From NCBI RefSeq assembly GCF_035594765.1, contig NC_085847.1:6510392-6574000 (forward strand): a stretch of 63,609 nt of DNA, in the 5' to 3' direction. Numbering within the stretch: the first letter of the stretch is position 1; each line of letters starts with the position of its first letter. The stretch comes from Anolis carolinensis (taxonomy: Eukaryota). This document shows, piece by piece, positions 9,579 through 26,279 of this stretch. The notes below the pieces were generated by a model. It was not told the DNA's origin. It made no database searches and saw only the letters and a list, made by a program, of their open reading frames with translations. The translations under genes were made by a program, and so were the position numbers.

Positions 9579-11914
9579 GCATTTCTAATACCACTTTTCT
9601 CACCCCTGGGGGGACTCAAACATAATAAATGGCAAAATTCAATGCCTCACATACGTATAGAAAAATATATCACATATTTAAATGTTGGAGGAGCTAGGCA
9701 TTCCTAGAGAAGGCTTCTCTCTGTGGATCTCTTTGGGATATATATATACAGGATATACCTGGAGGTCTTTTGGGATCTCCCCCTTTATTTGTCTCCCCGT
9801 TTTTTTTCTAGGTGGTCCAAAAGTGTCTCGATTTGGGCGCCAGCTCTGCTCAGTTCGTCGCGGCGGACATGAGCAATATGACGGAAGCCCAGAGAGTGAT
9901 CAAGGAAACCAAGGACGCAATGGGTAAAGCGCCAACCTTGCCCCACGCCCCACACCCAGACGCGACCCTCTAGCCTGGCAGTTTGCTTTTGCCCAAATGT
10001 ACTGGTGACAAATCAAGGGTGGCTTTGGGGCTGATGTCCTGCTCTTGGGCTGCCCTGAGTGCCTCTTGTGCCCTTTTCTCGCCGGCCAGGCGGCCTGGAC
10101 CACCTGATCTTGAACCACGTGGGCAAAACCTCTCTGTTTGGCCCCTTCCAATGGGACCTGGAGCCTGTGATCAAGACCATGACGGTCAACTTCTTCAGCT
10201 ACGTCCAGCTCACCCTTTCGGCCCGGGACATGTTGCGGGAGTCGCAGGGGAGCATCGTCGTCGTCTCTTCCGTGGCCGGTAGGAAAAAGCTCCTCCAGCC
10301 CGTTAAACGGGGGGCTCGATCCCAACATAATCGGGATGGAGAGAAGGAAGTCCCATCACAGGGATGGCAAGCCGGAGAAGGTTCCTTAGTCAAGTAGATC
10401 TAGAATACATCCTGCCACGGCTACCATGGTCACTAAGGACCTTATCACATCAACCGTTTATATCAGGATGCATCCTGTCTTTTTGGGGACTAGATACATT
10501 CTGTCACACCTCATTAGGATGATGTTTACAATTAGAATCCCCTGTGCAACGTTTTGCGGACAGATTCTGACAGATTCGTGAGGGAACATCATGTGACAGA
10601 ACCTGTTCGGAATCATGTCCAGAGTCTCAGAAATGGCGTACATCCCAATGTGATAAGATCCTAGACCTCTCTCTAGGAGTTGCACTGATTCCTCGATTCT
10701 CAGACACAATCCAAACCATTGATGGTCCCCAATGCCAACTGAGAACTGCTCCATGGAGGAACAGGACACATTGAGGTGGGCTCTCCATCTCCGGAGGTCT
10801 TTGAGTCGAGGTGGGGTGGGCACCTCGCTTGGGTGCTTCAGTTGTGCACTTTGGCCAAGTGGGTGGTTGGACTAGAGCAGTGGTTCCCAAACTTATTTGG
10901 CCTGCCGCCCCCTTTCCAGAAAAAATATGACTCAGCGGCCCCTGGAAAAGAGGGCGTGGCTTAGAGGGGTGGGCGTGGCTCCTGTTCAAGGGGTGGGGCT
11001 GAGCCTCTCCCCAGTCCAAGATGCAGGGAGGGGGAGGTGGGCGGGGCCACAAATGGGCAGCCAGGACTGGGAGTTCTGAGCTCTGAGGCAGGGCTGAGCT
11101 TCTATCAGGACACAGGGGGCGGGGCTAGTGGAGGGGGCGGGGCCTCTTCCCAAGTGCCTGACGGGACTGAACCTCTCTACCACACCCCCGTGTTCTAACA
11201 AGCGCCTCAGGGGAGGATGCAGAGACTCTTGGGAAGAGGCCCCGCCCCTGCCCCTAGCCCCGCCCTTTAGTCCTAAAAGGCCTCTCAGGAGAAATAGAGG
11301 CTCAGCCCTGTCTCGGGCTGTTGAAAGGAGGCCCCGCCCCTCCCCTGGCCCCGCCCCGCTGGATCGCTGCAGTGCCCACCAGGGGGCGGTAGCGCCCACT
11401 TTGGGAATCACTGGACTAGACGTTCCAAAGCAGCCAATTCTGCAAAATCCACGTGGCATCCTCTCTGTCCTAGGCCGTGTCCCGTCCCCGTTCTCCGTCC
11501 CGTACGTGGCGAGTAAATTTGCGCTGGAGGGTTTCTACAGCAGCCTGCGCTCCGAGCTCCGGCTCCTGAATGCCGAGCTGCCCATCACCGTGGCGGTTTT
11601 GGGGTACATCGACACAGGTAAGACCGAGGCCAAAGCGCCCACCTTGCAACAGCACCCAGAGCTGTCCTCACCTCAGCCTGCCTGCCTTCTTCCCTCCAGA
11701 CACGGCTGTGAACTGCCTGAAGGGCAAAATGTTGGGGTCGCCGAGTCCGAAAGCGGAATGCGCCCGGGCCATTGTGAAGGGCGGCATGCTGAGAGAGCGG
11801 GAGGTTTTCTATCCTTACTGGTCCGTCAGACCCATCATCTTCCTCCGGGATTGGATGCCCGAACTCGTGGACTATCTCGTCAGCAGAGCCTACCTGGTGG
11901 AGAATATCGCCTAG
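8462..11914 (+). CDS. 11beta-hydroxysteroid dehydrogenase 1-like SDR (HSD11B1/HSD11B1L family paralog); exons 8462-8543, 8624-8754, 9812-9923, 10090-10278, 11474-11617, 11700-11914 (290 aa)
   Basis: N-terminal signal anchor MAARRILFSLLVALCAYHFY; Rossmann motif TGSSMGIG; TARR (basic, NADP(H)-type); GGLDHLILNH; catalytic SS...YVASK; VLGYIDT. Exon sizes 82/131/112/189/144 follow the HSD11B1 pattern as I recall it. All introns are GT-AG and in frame (873 nt). Confidence 0.92.
8757..9575. repeat. Composite VNTR: about 7 copies of a ~65 bp LINE-tail-like unit separated by (ATT)n/(AAT)n
   Basis: atgtatttatatgttgtacgccactttgaatcccacccatgggagaaaagcgggatagaaatgaat starts at ~8811, 8929, 9041, 9141, 9241, 9356 and (partial) 9465. 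Confidence 0.92.
10878..11413. mobile_element. Non-autonomous hAT MITE (536 bp), GC-box-rich, with an internal inverted repeat
   Basis: TIRs CAGTGGTTCCCAAA and TTTGGGAATCACTG; TSD GACTAGAG (10870-10877) / GACTAGAC (11414-11421). Confidence 0.88.
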
Positions 11915-12690: not shown

Positions 12691-12897
12691 TTGCTTTCTG
12701 ATGGGTTGATGTTGTTCTGTGCACAATATTATTAAAAATATTGCCTAAAAGGACCTTTAAACTACAACTCCCAGAATTGCATTACATTGTTCAAGGGGAG
12801 GGGGAGCAGAGGTGTAGCCAGAGAAAGACGCCGAGACGGATTAGAGCATGCATTGCACTTTAATGCGCGTTGCTTCTTCCTGCACATGGGAAGGAAG

Positions 12898-13934
12898 TTA
12901 GGCCCCAGGTGGGTTCTTGTCGGGCCCCTTGCCGTCGTTGTCGTTCTCATCCTCTTTGTTGCCTTTGAATCTGGCCCGCATGGGGGTGTTGAAGGCCCCG
13001 GTGCTGCTGGAGGAACTTGCAGGTGGAGAAGACAGACCACCGGGAGGGAACCTGGAGACCAGGAAAGACAAGGCAGGAATCAGCAAGAGCAAAGGCATGA
13101 ATTGCGCAGACACTACGTTGCCACATCCATGTCTTTTGGCCCCAATGGATCGCCATGGCTCAAGGCTATGGGGTCTTAAGAGTTGCAGTCTGACAAGCTC
13201 TTGTAAAAGAGTGCCGGCGCCAAACTACAACTCTCATAACCCAGATACCCCTTGATATGCCCCAAAATTCCCAGGACCCTCTGACGGAAGCCAGACCTTG
13301 GAGGATTGGCGCATCTCATCCGGCCGACGACGGAGCCGCCGCCCAAGGTGGAAGGACGGAAGCCGCTGGGGTTGAGAATGAAAGGGCGCAGGTCGACCAT
13401 GCTGTCGGGAAGAGAGAGGGAGTGGGGGTCTGGATTTGGCTGGGGTACCAAATTGGGGGGAGTGCCCCCTCTACCCTTCCCGCTCCCTCGTCTGCTTTTC
13501 AAATGTCCCAGTTTCCTTCTCCTCCCCCGCTTTTCATGCCTTGCTCAGCTAACTCTTAACTGCTGCCAACTGAACGACAATACGGCTGGCACTCCAGTGA
13601 TCTCAACGGAAGGGAAAGGAGACTGTCGAGAGACCTGCCACTCACCTCTTTTGATTGACAGAGGACATGCCAGCCCAGAGCTGTTTCAGGTCAATGTTGG
13701 AGGTGCCGCTTCTCTCCGTCTGGTGGGGAGCCAAAAGGAAAAACTTAGAATCTGTCGCAAGAAAGGGCTCCAATCTCCTAAGAACTTCCCAAGGGGTCTA
13801 AAGAAGCAACATTTCTTTATTTTTAATGTCTTTAGCTTGAGTTTAGGGCTAGGTCCTGGGGAGTCTAAGGACCAAATCCTCACTTGGAAACCTTAGTCAA
13901 GTCACACCATCATGGGATATGCAGTTTGAAAACA

Positions 13935-13984
<50 letters not shown>

Positions 13985-14231
13985 TAATATTATTATTCCT
14001 ATTTATTTTATTATGACACAGCAAACAAGATAGATATGCTGGATTTCGTATCACAAAATCACAAGTCGAACACTTCCCAAGTGTTGTTGTATGTCTTTCG
14101 GGCTGTGTGGCCATGTTCCAGAAGTATTCTCTCCTGACTTCCCAAGTGTCTAGGACTGTGTGATGTATTTTCGGATGATGTGTGCAGATCCCAGTAGGGT
14201 GGCCTTTTGCAGTTGGCAGATCGTGATTTCC

Positions 14232-14271
<40 letters not shown>

Positions 14272-15098
14272 TTGTTATTATTTGACTACTGTCCTCTCTT
14301 AAAAGACACTCAAAGCAGCTGGAGTTCTCTGGGAGTTCTACCTTCTCTTCCCTTGAACTGCAAATCCCAGGATGCTGTGACAGTTAAAGTGGAATAATAC
14401 CACTACAATTGCATAGTTTGAAAGGTTCCCAGGCAGAAATCTGAACGACTGAAGGAGCTGTTCCCAGATTGAGGAAAAGCAAATGGAAGACTTCTTCTCA
14501 CGGTGACTTAGAGATGGGATAAAGTTTAACCTCAGCGGCTTCCTTCTAGTTGGACACGGGGGGCAAAGCAGAGTGGAGGGTGAGCCCTGGCAACACAAGA
14601 ACTGGAAGGAAGAAGAAAGCAAAGACCTGCCGGAGCCTTGGGCAACAAAGCCACCCCCGCCGGAGCCCTTTCTATCCCCCAGTGGAAACGCCAACTGGCA
14701 AGGGGGTTTAGCACAAACCTGTTTGGGAAAAGCAGCCAAGGCTTGGGCCACGTCCGGCATGGGTGGCAAGGCCCGGAGCCGGTTCTGGCGGGGGCTGAAG
14801 CCTCCCAACATGAAGGCTCTCCGGGTCCGTCTCTCGGGGGGTCTCCAGGTGGTCCTCTTGGCCGCTGCAAAGCAAGAGCGCTCACTGATAGCCCCCTGGG
14901 CCCCACCCAAGGCTGGCATCAGGGCCAGGGACCACCACAGTCGGCACCCGCCGGCCAGGCTTACCACGAGCATAGCTGTTGGCCTTCTTCATCTCCCGTT
15001 TCAGTTGCTCCACTCGCTCTTCCATCTCCATCTCTTCCAAGGCGTTGACATAGTTGGAATCTCCCTGAAGCAGGGCAAAGAACTTGGCCTGGGGAGGA

Positions 15099-15148
<50 letters not shown>

Positions 15149-15332
15149 GGACCCAAAGACACAGTATGACACAGCAAACAAGATATATATGCTGGATTTC
15201 ATACCACAAAATCACAAGTCAAACACTTCCCTATTATTATTATTATTATTGACACAAAGACACAGTATGACACACCAAACGAGATATATATGCTGGATTT
15301 CATATCACAAAATCACAAGTCAAACACTTCCC

Positions 15333-15375
<43 letters not shown>

Positions 15376-15558
15376 GACACAAAGACACAGTATGACACAC
15401 CAAACGAGATATATATGCTGGATTTCATACCACAAAATCACAAGTCAAACACTTCCCTATTATTATTATTATTATTGACACAAAGACACAGTATGACACA
15501 CCAAACGAGATATATATGCTGGATTTCATACCACAAAATCACAAGTTGAACACTTCCC

Positions 15559-15604
<46 letters not shown>

Positions 15605-15697
15605 GACACAAAGACACAGTATGACACAGCAAACAAGATATATATGCTGGATTTCGTATCACAAAATCACAAGTCAAACACATCATCATCATCATCA

Positions 15698-15729
<32 letters not shown>

Positions 15730-15915
15730 GGGCTGTTTCTGGAACTACACAACACCCCATTGATTCCGTCTGTTAAAGCCTTCAACAATTTATTACTATT
15801 ATTATTATTATTGACACAACGACATAGTATGATACAGCAAACGAGATCTATATGCTGTATTTTATATCACAAAATCACAAGTCGAACACTTCCCAAGCGT
15901 TTAGGACTGTGTGAT

Positions 15916-15968
<53 letters not shown>

Positions 15969-16057
15969 GTATGACACAGCAAACAAGATAGATATGCTGG
16001 ATTTCATATCACAAAATTACAAGTCAAACACTTCCCAAGTGTTTAGGACTGTGTGAT

Positions 16058-16112
<55 letters not shown>

Positions 16113-16810
16113 GAGAGCAATGACTGGGTCGGGAATAGTAAACAAGTATGACCCCTGTATCCATGGAAGAGATTCCTGGATTTCGCACTGAGAGTTGGAG
16201 ACCCAAAAACAAATCATCGCAAGCCCTATTGAATGAAGGACCATAGAGATGCACTGGAGGACCCACAAAATGCCTAGAGGGGGTGCATTTTGTCAGACAT
16301 GGCTAAAGGAAACTACATGGAATGGCGAGCCCAATTAAAACAAAGGACTTCCGGCCCAAGAAGACCATACGGTTATCCTGGAGGACTTGGAAAATGCCTG
16401 TAGAGGGCATATGGATAAATTACACCTATGGATGCTCATGGGTATGTGGGATTGTGTTATACTTGCACAGTCAGGGATACGGATAGAGGGGGGAAACACC
16501 CCGCAAGAAGAAAACTAGCACCTCAAGGGAGGTTTCCGCCGAGGTGCTAGATTTCTCCTTGCAAGGAGAGGCTTTCCTTGGGCCTTGCCTTGAGGTAGTC
16601 CAGCAGGCTGGCGTTCTCGGCCTCCTCCTGCTTGCGCTTGCGCACCACGCGCTCGCAGATGCCCGGGTTCTGCTCCATTTGGGCGTAAAGGTCCTGCAGG
16701 GCTTTCTGGGTGTAGTTCAAGGCTTGCCCTTCAAAGTCCTGGGGGGTGATCCGCTCACAGAAGGAAATGATGAGCGGATATTCGTTGTCAAATTCATCCA
16801 GGATCTCCAT
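12898..16810 (-). CDS. Uncharacterised protein (274 aa) with a NEMP/TMEM194-C-terminal-like helical domain; coding exons 16810-16589, 15088-14965, 14864-14719, 13719-13646, 13401-13297, 13051-12898
   Basis: Six exons with polypyrimidine acceptors join in phase (0,1,0,2,2) into an 825-nt ORF; GC-rich coding-like islands inside AT-rich repeat DNA; ATTAAA at 12859-12864 just after the stop; upstream exon and promoter near 18648-18780. The first two exons are more certain than the last four. Confidence 0.78.
13985..14230 (-). mobile_element. R4/Dong-like 3' fragments in (ATT)n
   Basis: Reverse complement of the 5840-5990 element, including ggccttttgcagttggcagatcgtgat. Confidence 0.7.
15100..16110 (-). 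mobile_element. Array of about 7 R4/Dong-like 3'-end units alternating with (ATT)n
   Basis: Repeated gacacaaagacacagtatgacacagcaaacaagatatatatgctggatttcatatcacaaaatcacaagtcaaacacttccc units. Confidence 0.75.
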
Positions 16811-16849
16811 CTTGTGTCCTAGGCAAAGCAGGGGGAAATCAAGAAATAT

Positions 16850-18440
16850 GATTATTATTACGTATTATTAGATTATATTATTATTAGTAGTAGTACTATA
16901 TTGTATTATATTATAATATTGTTATCAATATTATATGTCTATACAATATATTACATTATGAGCATAGTACAATATTATTATACATAATTATTGTGTATTA
17001 TTATTAGTATTATATATTATTATATTGTATTATTAGTATGATATTGTATTACATAATATTACTATTAATATTATATATATATAATGTGCCTAGCACATTA
17101 GCGTTATATATTATATTGTATTATTATTAGTATGATATTGTATTACATAATAATATTACATTAATATTATATACAATATATTATTTTATGAGCCTAGCAC
17201 AATACTAGTATTATATATTATTATATTGTATTATTAGGAGTATATTGAATTACATAATAATATTACTATTCATATTATATACAATATATTATATTATCAG
17301 CCTAGCACATAATTATGTATTACATAATAATATTACTATTCATATTATATACAATATATTATATTATGAGCCTAGCACAACATTAGTATTATTAGTATCA
17401 TATTGAATTAGATAATAATATTACTATTAATATTCTATATATTATATTATGAGCCTCGCACGATATTAGTATTATTAGTATCATATTGAATTACATAATC
17501 ATATTACTATATTATATATATTATATTATGAGCCTAGCACAATATTAGTATTATTAGTATCATATTGAATTACATAATAATATTACTATTAATATTATAT
17601 ATTATATTATGAGCCTAGCACAGTATTAGTATTATTAGTATCATATTGAATTACATCATAATATTACTATTAATATTCTATATTATGAGCCTAGCACAAT
17701 ATTAGTATTATTAGTATCATATTGAATTACATAATAATATTACTATTAATATTATATATTATATTATGAGCCTAGCACAGTATTAGTATTATTAGTATCA
17801 TATTGAATTACATAATAATATTACTATTAATATTATATATTATATTATGAGCCTAGCACAGTATTAGTATTATTAGTATCATATTGAATTACATAATAAT
17901 ATTACTATTAATATTATATATTATATTATGAGCCTAGCACAGTATTAGTATTATTAGTATCATATTGAATTACATAATCATATTACAGTAGAGTCTCACT
18001 AATCCAAGCTAAACGGGCCAGCAGAAGCTTGGATAAGCGAATATCTTGGATAATAAGGAGGGATTAAGGAAAAGCCTATTAAACATCAAATTAGGTTATG
18101 ATTTTACAAATTCAGCACCAAAACATCATGTTATGCAACAAATTGGACAGAAAAAGTAGTTCAATATGCAGTAATGTTATGTTGTAATTACTGTATTTAC
18201 GAATTTAGCACCAAAATATCATGATATATTGAAAACATTGACTACAAAAATGGCTTGGATAATCCAGAAGCTTGGATAAGCGAGGCTTGGATAAGTGAGA
18301 CTCTACAGTACTATTACTATTCTATATTATATTATGAGCATAGCACAATATTAGTATCATATATTACTAGATTGTCCTATACCACTAGACTGCAATATTG
18401 TTATTATTATATTATAGTATGATATTATAATAATATGGAT
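16850..18440. repeat. AT-rich minisatellite (~80 bp unit) interrupted by a MITE
   Basis: gagcctagcacagtattagtattattagtatcatattgaattacataataatattactattaat recurs with a period of about 81 (e.g. 17768, 17849, 17930). Confidence 0.9.
17986..18308. mobile_element. Tc1/mariner-type MITE
   Basis: TIR CAGTAGAGTCTCACT..., TA flanks; same family as 12098-12420. Confidence 0.9.
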
Positions 18441-18479
18441 AAATAGGGCTGAGTCTATGTATTATTTATTTCAAGTTTG

Positions 18480-18780
18480 GGCAGTGGGCGGGGCCTTGTC
18501 CTGCTCAGGGGCGGGGCTTTTCCAGAACCCCGCCCTGCCCTCAAGCCTCATTTTCCCTGGGCCAGTGGGCGGGGCCTTCCCCTGCCCGTGGGGCGTGGCT
18601 TCCCTCCCCAAACCCCACCCCTTCTCCCCTCCGGGGGCGGGGCTTACCTCTCCCCCTAGGCTCAGTTGTTGCTTGGTGGAGTGTCGGGCTTCTTCTGCGC
18701 CTGTGCGCAGCTGCTTGGCCGGCTTGGCCCGTTGGCCCCATTGTGACGCAAGAGGTCACGTGGCCGCCTAGGAGCAGGCC
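18480..18780 (-). promoter_or_regulatory. Promoter and first exon (donor after 18648) of the uncharacterised gene
   Basis: Minus-strand GAG|GTAAGC donor; E-box GTCACGTG (~18755-18762), CRE half-site TGACGCA, an NRF1-like GCGC repeat and several GGGCGGGG boxes. Confidence 0.65.
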
Positions 18781-26151: not shown

Positions 26152-26279
26152 NNNNNNNNNNNNNNNNNNNNNNNNNNNNNNNNNNNNNNNNNNNNNNNNN
26201 NNNNNNNNNNNNNNNNNNNNNNNNNNNNNNNNNNNNNNNNNNNNNNNNNNNNNNNNNNNNNNNNNNNNNNNNNNNNNNN
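26152..26279. other. Assembly gap (128 N)
   Basis: Run of N. Confidence 1.

Follow-up and report, generated by a model that had tools for sequence, protein, structure and literature searches.

Region B of the NEMP proteins has been described as a distinct type of Ran-binding motif, with a membrane protein as its only known carrier (PMC4422613). Direct binding to RanGTP was seen for mouse region B, and Ran is also bound by plant NEMP tails that share little similarity; the NEMP-Ran interaction is species-matched, is abolished by small deletions and requires region B in full, with the BAF-site segment included (PMC4422613). For Xenopus Nemp1, BAF was also reported as a ligand of region B, but outside vertebrate Nemp1/2 the BAF site is not conserved, and the contact with BAF may be made indirectly through DNA (PMC4422613). 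PRR11 contains APC/C motifs, is under cell-cycle regulation and acts on Arp2/3 (PMC3591657, PMC8720695). The gene compared here with these systems lies in a 63,609-nucleotide stretch of the Anolis carolinensis genome (the window; contig NC_085847.1, positions 6,510,392 to 6,574,000).

Gene structure, transcripts and family

The Anolis gene is encoded on the minus strand, with six coding exons, 274 codons and one GC-AG intron. Its features, in window coordinates, are as follows.

18740..18780, minus strand: candidate core promoter, by motifs only (E-box CACGTG at 18757-18762, CRE-like TGCGTCA at 18744-18750)
18648..18740 (5' end approximate), minus strand: probable non-coding exon 1, with a strong donor (GAG/GTAAGC) and contig extensions
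18486..18640, minus strand: cluster of five GC boxes where intron 1 begins; the Elgaria upstream region matches at blastn E 0.003
16589..16818, minus strand: exon 2, coding 16810-16589 from the ATG at 16810 and ending in a GC donor; residues 1-74, with an acidic EFD motif, an invariant Cys18, a NEMP region-B-like helix (19-55) and a basic patch (57-60)
15088-14965, minus strand: exon 3, residues 75-115; a short helix, weakly similar to the latter half of NEMP region B, followed by a long amphipathic one
14864-14719, minus strand: exon 4, disordered, with a basic patch where the ancestral RxSxRL motif sits
13719-13646, minus strand: exon 5, with the amniote-type motif L-K-x-x-W-x-G
13401-13297, minus strand: exon 6, corresponding in degenerate form to the WH2-like segment of the ancestral tail; exon position same in shark
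13051-12898, minus strand: exon 7, ending in TAA; retains the last family motif F-N-x5-[KR]-F, SPGGTP lost
12859..12864, minus strand: candidate poly(A) signal ATTAAA, by motif only, starting 33 nt past the stop

The six coding exons sum to 825 nt (274 amino acids plus stop) with zero internal stops and intron phases of 0,1,0,2,2. All acceptors were AG and four donors GT; the fifth, at exon 2, is GC in Anolis but GT in Elgaria, kiwi, shark and koala. Contigs from three studies (runs presumed to be RNA) joined four of the five coding introns exactly, with intron lengths as predicted: exons 2/3 (runs X3 and X9), 3/4 (X9), 4/5 (X4 and X9) and 6/7 (X9). The exon 5/6 junction was absent among the contig pieces listed and was backed by the Elgaria and kiwi proteins. 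The values of dN/dS against Elgaria (0.16 for exon 2, 0.25 for exon 3, 0.23 to 0.49 for the tail exons) indicated purifying selection, which together with the conserved exon structure excluded a pseudogene or artefact. Read-through of exon 2 to an in-frame stop 27 codons on was likewise excluded, as contigs spliced at the GC donor. This is a real, spliced gene, and the phase-consistent six-exon frame of the original prediction was borne out by contig joints, phases and dN/dS.

Upstream, contigs of three runs extended 23 to 28 unaligned nt past 16820, beyond exon 2, and a seventh, non-coding exon probably ends at the GTAAGC donor after 18648. The GC-box stretch adjoining it was weakly conserved in Elgaria and kiwi. 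The promoter is not a CpG island, its CpG o/e being 0.46. Of the promoter and poly(A) signal proposed for the gene, both are candidates by motif. The window also contains an N gap at 26152-26279.

By sequence similarity, the gene belongs to an unnamed animal-wide family. A search with exon 2 returned 119 clusters, from sponges to mammals, which overturned the earlier description of the gene as an orphan; the remainder of that interpretation, a soluble protein with an N-terminal domain distantly related to NEMP region B, stood. Named cluster members were all 'uncharacterized' or automatically named (MTFR-, WIP- or shootin-like for some), the family has RefSeq LOC models, and vertebrate members follow the species tree. 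As the original prediction proposed to check, the family was found in the SIRT4-PLA2G1B interval, in arowana, caecilian, kiwi and lizards, and this position is old; the koala copy adjoins TOP3B. No match was obtained in NCBIfam, nor in an Atlas feature search with exon 2 or the chiton orthologue, and no description was found in literature searches on the family, SPGGTP, DUF7179 or the locus. Mouse 2610318N02Rik, the host of miR-130b, was considered as a conjectural orthologue and set aside; mir-130 was looked for in the koala locus and not found. The match to a 3017 aa repeat protein (P0110) was a chance coiled-coil. Elgaria protein P0002 was the full-length stand-in, with Anolis exons queried one by one; the comparison set was non-human, and alignments and trees left out two degenerate matches that might be primate (P0085, P0113).

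The N-terminal domain and NEMP region B

The Anolis product is a soluble protein of 274 residues; its N-terminal domain (about residues 1-117) folds into four helices in the models, and its tail is disordered. As anticipated, hydrophobic segments were lacking: the maximum 19-residue hydropathy was at most 0.54 within any Anolis exon and 1.42 in 39 full-length relatives, whereas a NEMP membrane exon, taken as the control, reached 2.16. Foldseek and VIA-align searches against the PDB returned generic helical matches only (best Z 5.7 and 7.6), a PDB sequence search returned a PhoU helix only, and no solved relative of the domain was found by these searches.

Pfam NEMP was the commonest Pfam match in the family, with 15 of 65 members at E<0.1 (best 2.2e-4), all in a single register (family 19-60 to profile 191-232). 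The best relatives reached about 20 bits, below the gathering cut-off of 28.7 bits, and Anolis exon 2 had no NEMP match in Pfam. In the other direction, searching 5.8e9 proteins with a family profile brought up a genuine NEMP fragment (E 8e-5), which scores 37.9 bits in Pfam NEMP, above the cut-off. Word-based searches for full-length NEMP proteins found none; the comparison used this single fragment. Against it, an unbiased profile scored 29.4 bits (maximum of 13.1 in 5000 shuffles; database-wide E 0.22), and hhalign of family and NEMP gave 96.7%. About 35 residues aligned well (residues 19-55), including an ungapped 31-residue stretch ending N-P, and the most conserved family residues (E27, Q29, T34, L38, L41, P49) were identical in the NEMP piece. 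The first helix motif of region B is therefore present in the Anolis family. The second (F-x-x-F-x-x-G type) aligned weakly at residues 77-86, as predicted (p 0.036), and one Pfam hit spanned both motifs. A shape search independently listed a cluster of NEMP fragments, at a TM of 0.42, below the same-fold line. An amniote-only profile scored 15.9 bits, barely above shuffles (13.7), which suggests that the lizard branch drifted further from NEMP.

Convergence on a common acidic amphipathic helix, with an unrelated domain, could also produce a short, helical match that never reaches the Pfam cut-off; an unrelated PhoU helix scored E 0.009 against the same profile, and no intron position shared with NEMP was evident. 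It is nevertheless improbable, given reciprocal profile matches in one register, the ungapped stretch, a second motif found where it had been predicted unprompted, and the independent shape match. The first half of the domain very probably shares distant ancestry with region B. The NEMP-like domain originally claimed is supported by profile comparison, strongly for residues 19-55 and weakly for 77-86, as a distant relationship below the Pfam cut-off. The family is not a member of NEMP proper, because region A (signal peptide, membrane spans) is absent.

Ancestry leaves the ligand to be considered. Retention of Ran binding by the Anolis domain has nearly an even chance; it is weakened by the BAF-site segment, which NEMP requires for Ran and which a different, longer one replaces in the family. 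A region B homologue acting as an adaptor for a partner other than Ran, nuclear or itself through the long helix, would fit the family's insertion and those additional conserved residues that NEMP does not have (E6-F7-D8, C18, E65, Y113), which point to a family-specific surface, as well as the sensitivity of NEMP-Ran binding to species and small deletions (PMC4422613). This is rather unlikely, as the most conserved residues of the first helix are those shared with NEMP, suggesting a shared partner. The decoy role for BAF in the original prediction takes its support from Xenopus Nemp1 and is very improbable: the segment at the BAF site is about 12 residues longer in the family and unlike the one NEMP piece compared, the site being one of vertebrate Nemp1/2 with possibly DNA-mediated binding. 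BAF binding by the Anolis protein is unlikely.

The tail in amniotes and non-amniotes

Non-amniote orthologues carried a tail with an HMGN-like RxSxRL motif, poly-proline, KEN/D-box-like words and a WH2-like/SPGGTP segment. R-x-S-[KR]-R-L-A directly followed helix 4 in 33 of 37 non-amniotes (0.7 by shuffle), poly-proline and a basic-Leu-basic segment with SPGGTP after it were each seen in 26 of 37, and a final helix ending KF in 33 of 37. The combined poly-proline, WH2-like and SPGGTP tail was found in 0 of 12 amniotes, and the RRSxRL motif was absent from the Anolis protein and its 12 amniote relatives. Anolis exon 6 had no match to the tail profile and a weak match in the full alignment. Judged by these motifs, amniotes including Anolis have lost the RxSxRL, poly-proline, KEN/D-box-like and WH2-like/SPGGTP features, and an ancestral motif-rich, cell-cycle-type tail is remodelled in amniotes.

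These features presumably resemble those of PRR11: a helical region, poly-proline, a WH2-like segment, SPGGTP, a last helix ending KF and KEN/D-box-like words. With the motif counts, the MTFR-, WIP- and shootin-like database names and the known cell-cycle and Arp2/3 role of PRR11, the family might work mainly in the manner of PRR11 or MTFR, as a proline-rich, WH2-like regulator of actin or organelles, its N-terminal domain a mere targeting module. Little probability is given to this, since Anolis and other amniotes are devoid of the tail motifs, and the tail module had no Pfam WH2 or MTFR match; matches to Pfam MTFR (PF05308) were weak (E 0.018-0.5) and over poly-proline only.

Proposed role and comparison with known systems

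The best guess, held tentatively and with a chance somewhat short of even, is that the Anolis protein acts as a soluble RanGTP-binding adaptor. The N-terminal domain would bind RanGTP at the importin-beta-binding surface, like region B, without a membrane anchor. Two basic patches, one at residues 57-60 and one where exon 4 begins, would bring the protein into the nucleus, where it would be a freely diffusing Ran-sensing adaptor or buffer. In non-amniotes the tail would further allow docking on chromatin (RxSxRL), timing of the CDK/APC type and contact with actin through the WH2-like segment, making that form a cell-division protein coupling the Ran signal to chromatin or actin. As amniotes retain the domain and the final tail motif but have exchanged everything else, the Anolis protein would be a reduced, Ran-domain-centred form. 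That animals have had such a soluble effector built on region B since sponges, with nucleosome docking, CDK and APC/C timing and actin contact, reduced in amniotes to the part that binds Ran and, it seems, decayed in apes, is unlikely as a whole. If true, it would connect the chromatin Ran gradient with nuclear or spindle actin in a way so far unrecognised, and the apparent ape decay would explain why human-centred work missed it.

Given the likeness of the soluble front end to NEMP's Ran-binding tail, animals may have a free-floating Ran-binding module. A confidently modelled soluble relative of 117 residues, conserved animal-wide, gives a handle on region B folding and Ran binding. It also provides a candidate, apparently unstudied Ran effector in fish, amphibians, reptiles, birds and many mammals, with the amniote tail remodelling as a natural experiment. 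Should Ran binding fail, an unnamed, deeply conserved animal family worth a Pfam entry would still stand.

The closest counterparts are the 'uncharacterized' RefSeq models of Elgaria (LOC134410657), kiwi (XP_067163427) and koala (LOC110215282), which are orthologues with the same six coding exons, and for which no family name, Pfam model or paper was found. MTFR1/MTFR2 (PF05308) are approached through the automatic 'MTFR-like' names of non-amniote orthologues; the family differs from these and from PRR11 in its NEMP-like N-terminal domain, and Anolis in being without the tail motifs. The motif after helix 4 in non-amniotes resembles the nucleosome-binding motif RRSARLSA of HMGN and Dsup and makes these proteins candidate binders by motif, although in most members the spacing from the first Arg to Ser is greater by one residue, and amniotes are without it. 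Compared with NEMP1/NEMP2 (TMEM194A/B, PF10225), the Anolis protein has no signal peptide, region A or membrane spans and, judged against the one NEMP piece compared, no recognisable BAF site; it places the domain N-terminally and is extended by an acidic arm with EFD and Cys in front, some 12 inserted residues within and a long fourth helix behind. It shares the helix motif at 19-55 and a basic NLS-like patch nearby, with a weak alignment to the second motif at 77-86.

Gene structure and splicing

The family gene encodes a soluble protein, and its coding exons (E2 to E7) are as follows:
16810-16589, minus strand, coding exon E2
15088-14965, minus strand, coding exon E3
14864-14719, minus strand, coding exon E4
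13719-13646, minus strand, coding exon E5
13401-13297, minus strand, coding exon E6
13051-12898, minus strand, coding exon E7

The peptide of the original prediction is coded from 16810 on the minus strand, and the six exons are phase consistent throughout, as proposed, and yield 274 codons and a stop. Contigs of public runs guessed to be RNA leave out exactly the predicted 1500, 100, 999 and 245 bases. They joined E2/E3 and E4/E5 in two studies each, and E3/E4 and E6/E7 in one, an exact match to four of the five coding introns. The E5/E6 joint was absent from the listed contig pieces; the Elgaria (alligator lizard) and kiwi proteins continue across it. Run X4, which bears a different species label, skipped 180 bases at 13093-13272; the edges of this gap are not of splice type, and the last intron has probably suffered a genomic deletion there. 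Per-exon dN/dS against Elgaria ranged from 0.16 to 0.49.

The first coding exon ends in a GC donor (AAG/GCAAGG, at 16589). This intron, which follows residue 74, begins with GT in all four other vertebrates checked: Elgaria, kiwi, white shark and koala. The GC-AG intron of the window is a recent GT-to-GC change with splicing retained. A non-coding exon 1 ending at 18648, a candidate GC-box/E-box promoter and ATTAAA at 12864 as candidate poly(A) signal are plausible. Intron 1 carries an AT-rich minisatellite of eight 81-bp copies (17223-17986), and in intron 2 (15104-15681) a short piece of a repeat element, with runs of ATT, is repeated in tandem.

Family distribution and genomic context

The gene had been taken for an orphan, which it is not. 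A phmmer search with exon 2 (residues 1-74) retrieved 119 clusters at E<0.001, from sponges to mammals. Named members came from reptiles and birds (horned lizard, alligator lizard, sea krait, kiwi, emu), mammals (donkey, pig, elk, rabbit, koala, echidna), other vertebrates (caecilian, newt, coelacanth, sharks, arowana, gar, lamprey) and invertebrates (amphioxus, hemichordate, crinoid, molluscs, brachiopod, two sponges), all labelled 'uncharacterized' or automatically named. Pfam and literature searches returned no name, Pfam model or paper for the family. RefSeq gene models already exist; what is new is a known domain in a soluble setting.

Searches and trees used window exons singly, and comparisons drew, as far as could be told, on non-human sequences. 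The N-terminal-domain tree agreed with vertebrate phylogeny and clustered the window exon with Phrynosoma, Elgaria and Laticauda (support 99/95). A separate squamate clade, which includes LOC134292936 of Anolis carolinensis and a Pogona gene adjoining THOC5 (loci L006 and L007; proteins P0020 and P0008/P0120), is a paralogue that has lost 4 residues just behind helix 3. In the gibbon model (P0093) residues 57-74 are missing and unrelated sequence stands in place of the family tail, which suggests decay in apes.

Gene order in the window (SIRT4, HSD11B1-like, family gene, PLA2G1B, MSI1) is the same in kiwi and Elgaria, and SIRT4 also adjoins the caecilian and arowana copies. The koala copy adjoins TOP3B, so the gene moved in at least one mammal lineage, which may account for the original prediction knowing of no such gene between human SIRT4 and PLA2G1B. 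The HSD11B1-like neighbour was located as follows:
8453-11911, plus strand, window
L002 12427-16680, kiwi locus
L009 52249-56433, caecilian locus
L001 19040 onward, Elgaria locus

In kiwi it sits within the family-gene intron that separates coding exons 2 and 3, and it is nested in the family gene in caecilian too, whereas in both lizards it lies downstream, tail to tail, and that intron is short (100 bp in the window); squamates seem to have un-nested it. A 7SK-like sequence follows the Elgaria gene by 200 bp (L001 15536-15735) and two U4 snRNA genes flank kiwi SIRT4 (L002 28705-29392); Rfam found neither U4 snRNA nor 7SK genes in the window.

Probable relationship of the N-terminal domain to NEMP

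The original prediction proposed a NEMP-like domain without hydrophobic segments. Membrane spans are indeed absent, which places the protein outside the NEMP family. The likeness itself held for residues 19-55, which hhalign matched to a NEMP piece at 96.7%; the second stretch named in the prediction, residues 77-86, aligned weakly and unprompted with the next NEMP exon. The window exon alone gave no Pfam NEMP match, but across 65 family members no Pfam entry was matched more often than NEMP: 15 members did so at E<0.1 (best 2.2e-4), and the next family reached 7. The NEMP matches always set family residues 19-60 on profile positions 191-232; one member covered 190-246, its sequence being longer there by about 12 residues. 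In the opposite direction, a profile of the family whose rows were picked partly for NEMP likeness retrieved a single non-family protein among 5.8 billion (E 8e-5). This is a true NEMP piece (Pfam 37.9 bits, cut-off 28.7), on an AT-rich contig downstream of a NEMP membrane exon. An unselected profile scored 29.4 bits against it (E 0.22 database-wide; best of 5000 shuffles 13.1). The window exon is 38% identical to it over 29 residues, and E27, Q29, T34, L38, L41 and P49, the family's most conserved positions there, are identical in NEMP. An Atlas shape search included a NEMP-fragment cluster among its matches (TM 0.42).

Distant homology with NEMP region B, the nucleoplasmic RanGTP-binding part (PF10225), is highly probable. 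Its limits are that a single NEMP sequence was compared, that the match is helical and short, and that a profile built from amniotes alone scored scarcely above noise. Convergence appears improbable. DUF7179 (PF23804) matched several members weakly in one register on the same helix (window 16589-16810; best E 0.0015) and may be a third user of the motif.

AlphaFold placed helices at 23-47, 49-67, 69-82 and 93-118 of the Elgaria orthologue, the full-length stand-in, with a disordered tail; pLDDT was mostly 80-95, and pTM of 0.43-0.57 leaves the packing uncertain. Structure searches found no outstanding solved fold for the domain. Helix 2 contains the RKRK patch, whose basic character is kept across the family; helix 4 is amphipathic, and its residues follow a heptad-like pattern.

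Tail motifs and possible function

Tail patterns of 37 full-length non-amniote members were chosen after viewing the sequences, so their excess over shuffles (expected counts in brackets) measures conservation, not function: RxSxR[LI] in 33 (0.7), poly-proline in 26 (0.3), a basic-Leu-basic segment with SPGGTP in 26 (0), a D-box-like PL[RK][DE]xxN word in 17 (0.3) and KEN in 9 (1.1), with 371 S/T-P sites (209). None of these motifs, nor the S/T-P excess, occurred in 12 amniote proteins, which retain only the last F-N...K-F motif, present also in window exon 7. Exons 4-6 carry new motifs common to amniotes. In exon 4 (14719-14760), Anolis carolinensis departs from the M-P-[RK]-[IV]-F-G-P motif common to mammals, birds and other lizards.

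The window gene is spliced and conserved, and its soluble product has a domain resembling region B. In mouse, region B makes direct contact with RanGTP at the Ran surface that importin beta uses, and needs its whole length to do so; plant NEMP tails of low similarity retain Ran binding (PMC4422613). The N-terminal domain would act as a RanGTP-binding module free of the membrane; its ancestral form would have been a full cell-division adaptor protein, also docking on nucleosomes, timed by CDK/APC and possibly touching actin in a PRR11-like manner, and the lizard protein would be the reduced version. We hold this whole reading tentatively, at somewhat under even chances; that the domain binds a different ligand is unlikely, though a serious contender. 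The BAF decoy originally suggested is very improbable, and region B may bind BAF indirectly (PMC4422613). The gene is solid and the homology good but distant; the predicted function would be cheap to check.

Window exon 6 corresponds to the shark exon that carries a WH2-like segment. A PRR11-like actin role has a slim chance. PRR11 has been cited for an actin-linked role (PMC3591657, PMC8720695), and the non-amniote RxSxR[LI] motif resembles the nucleosome motif of HMGN, RRSARLSA (PMC12487698).
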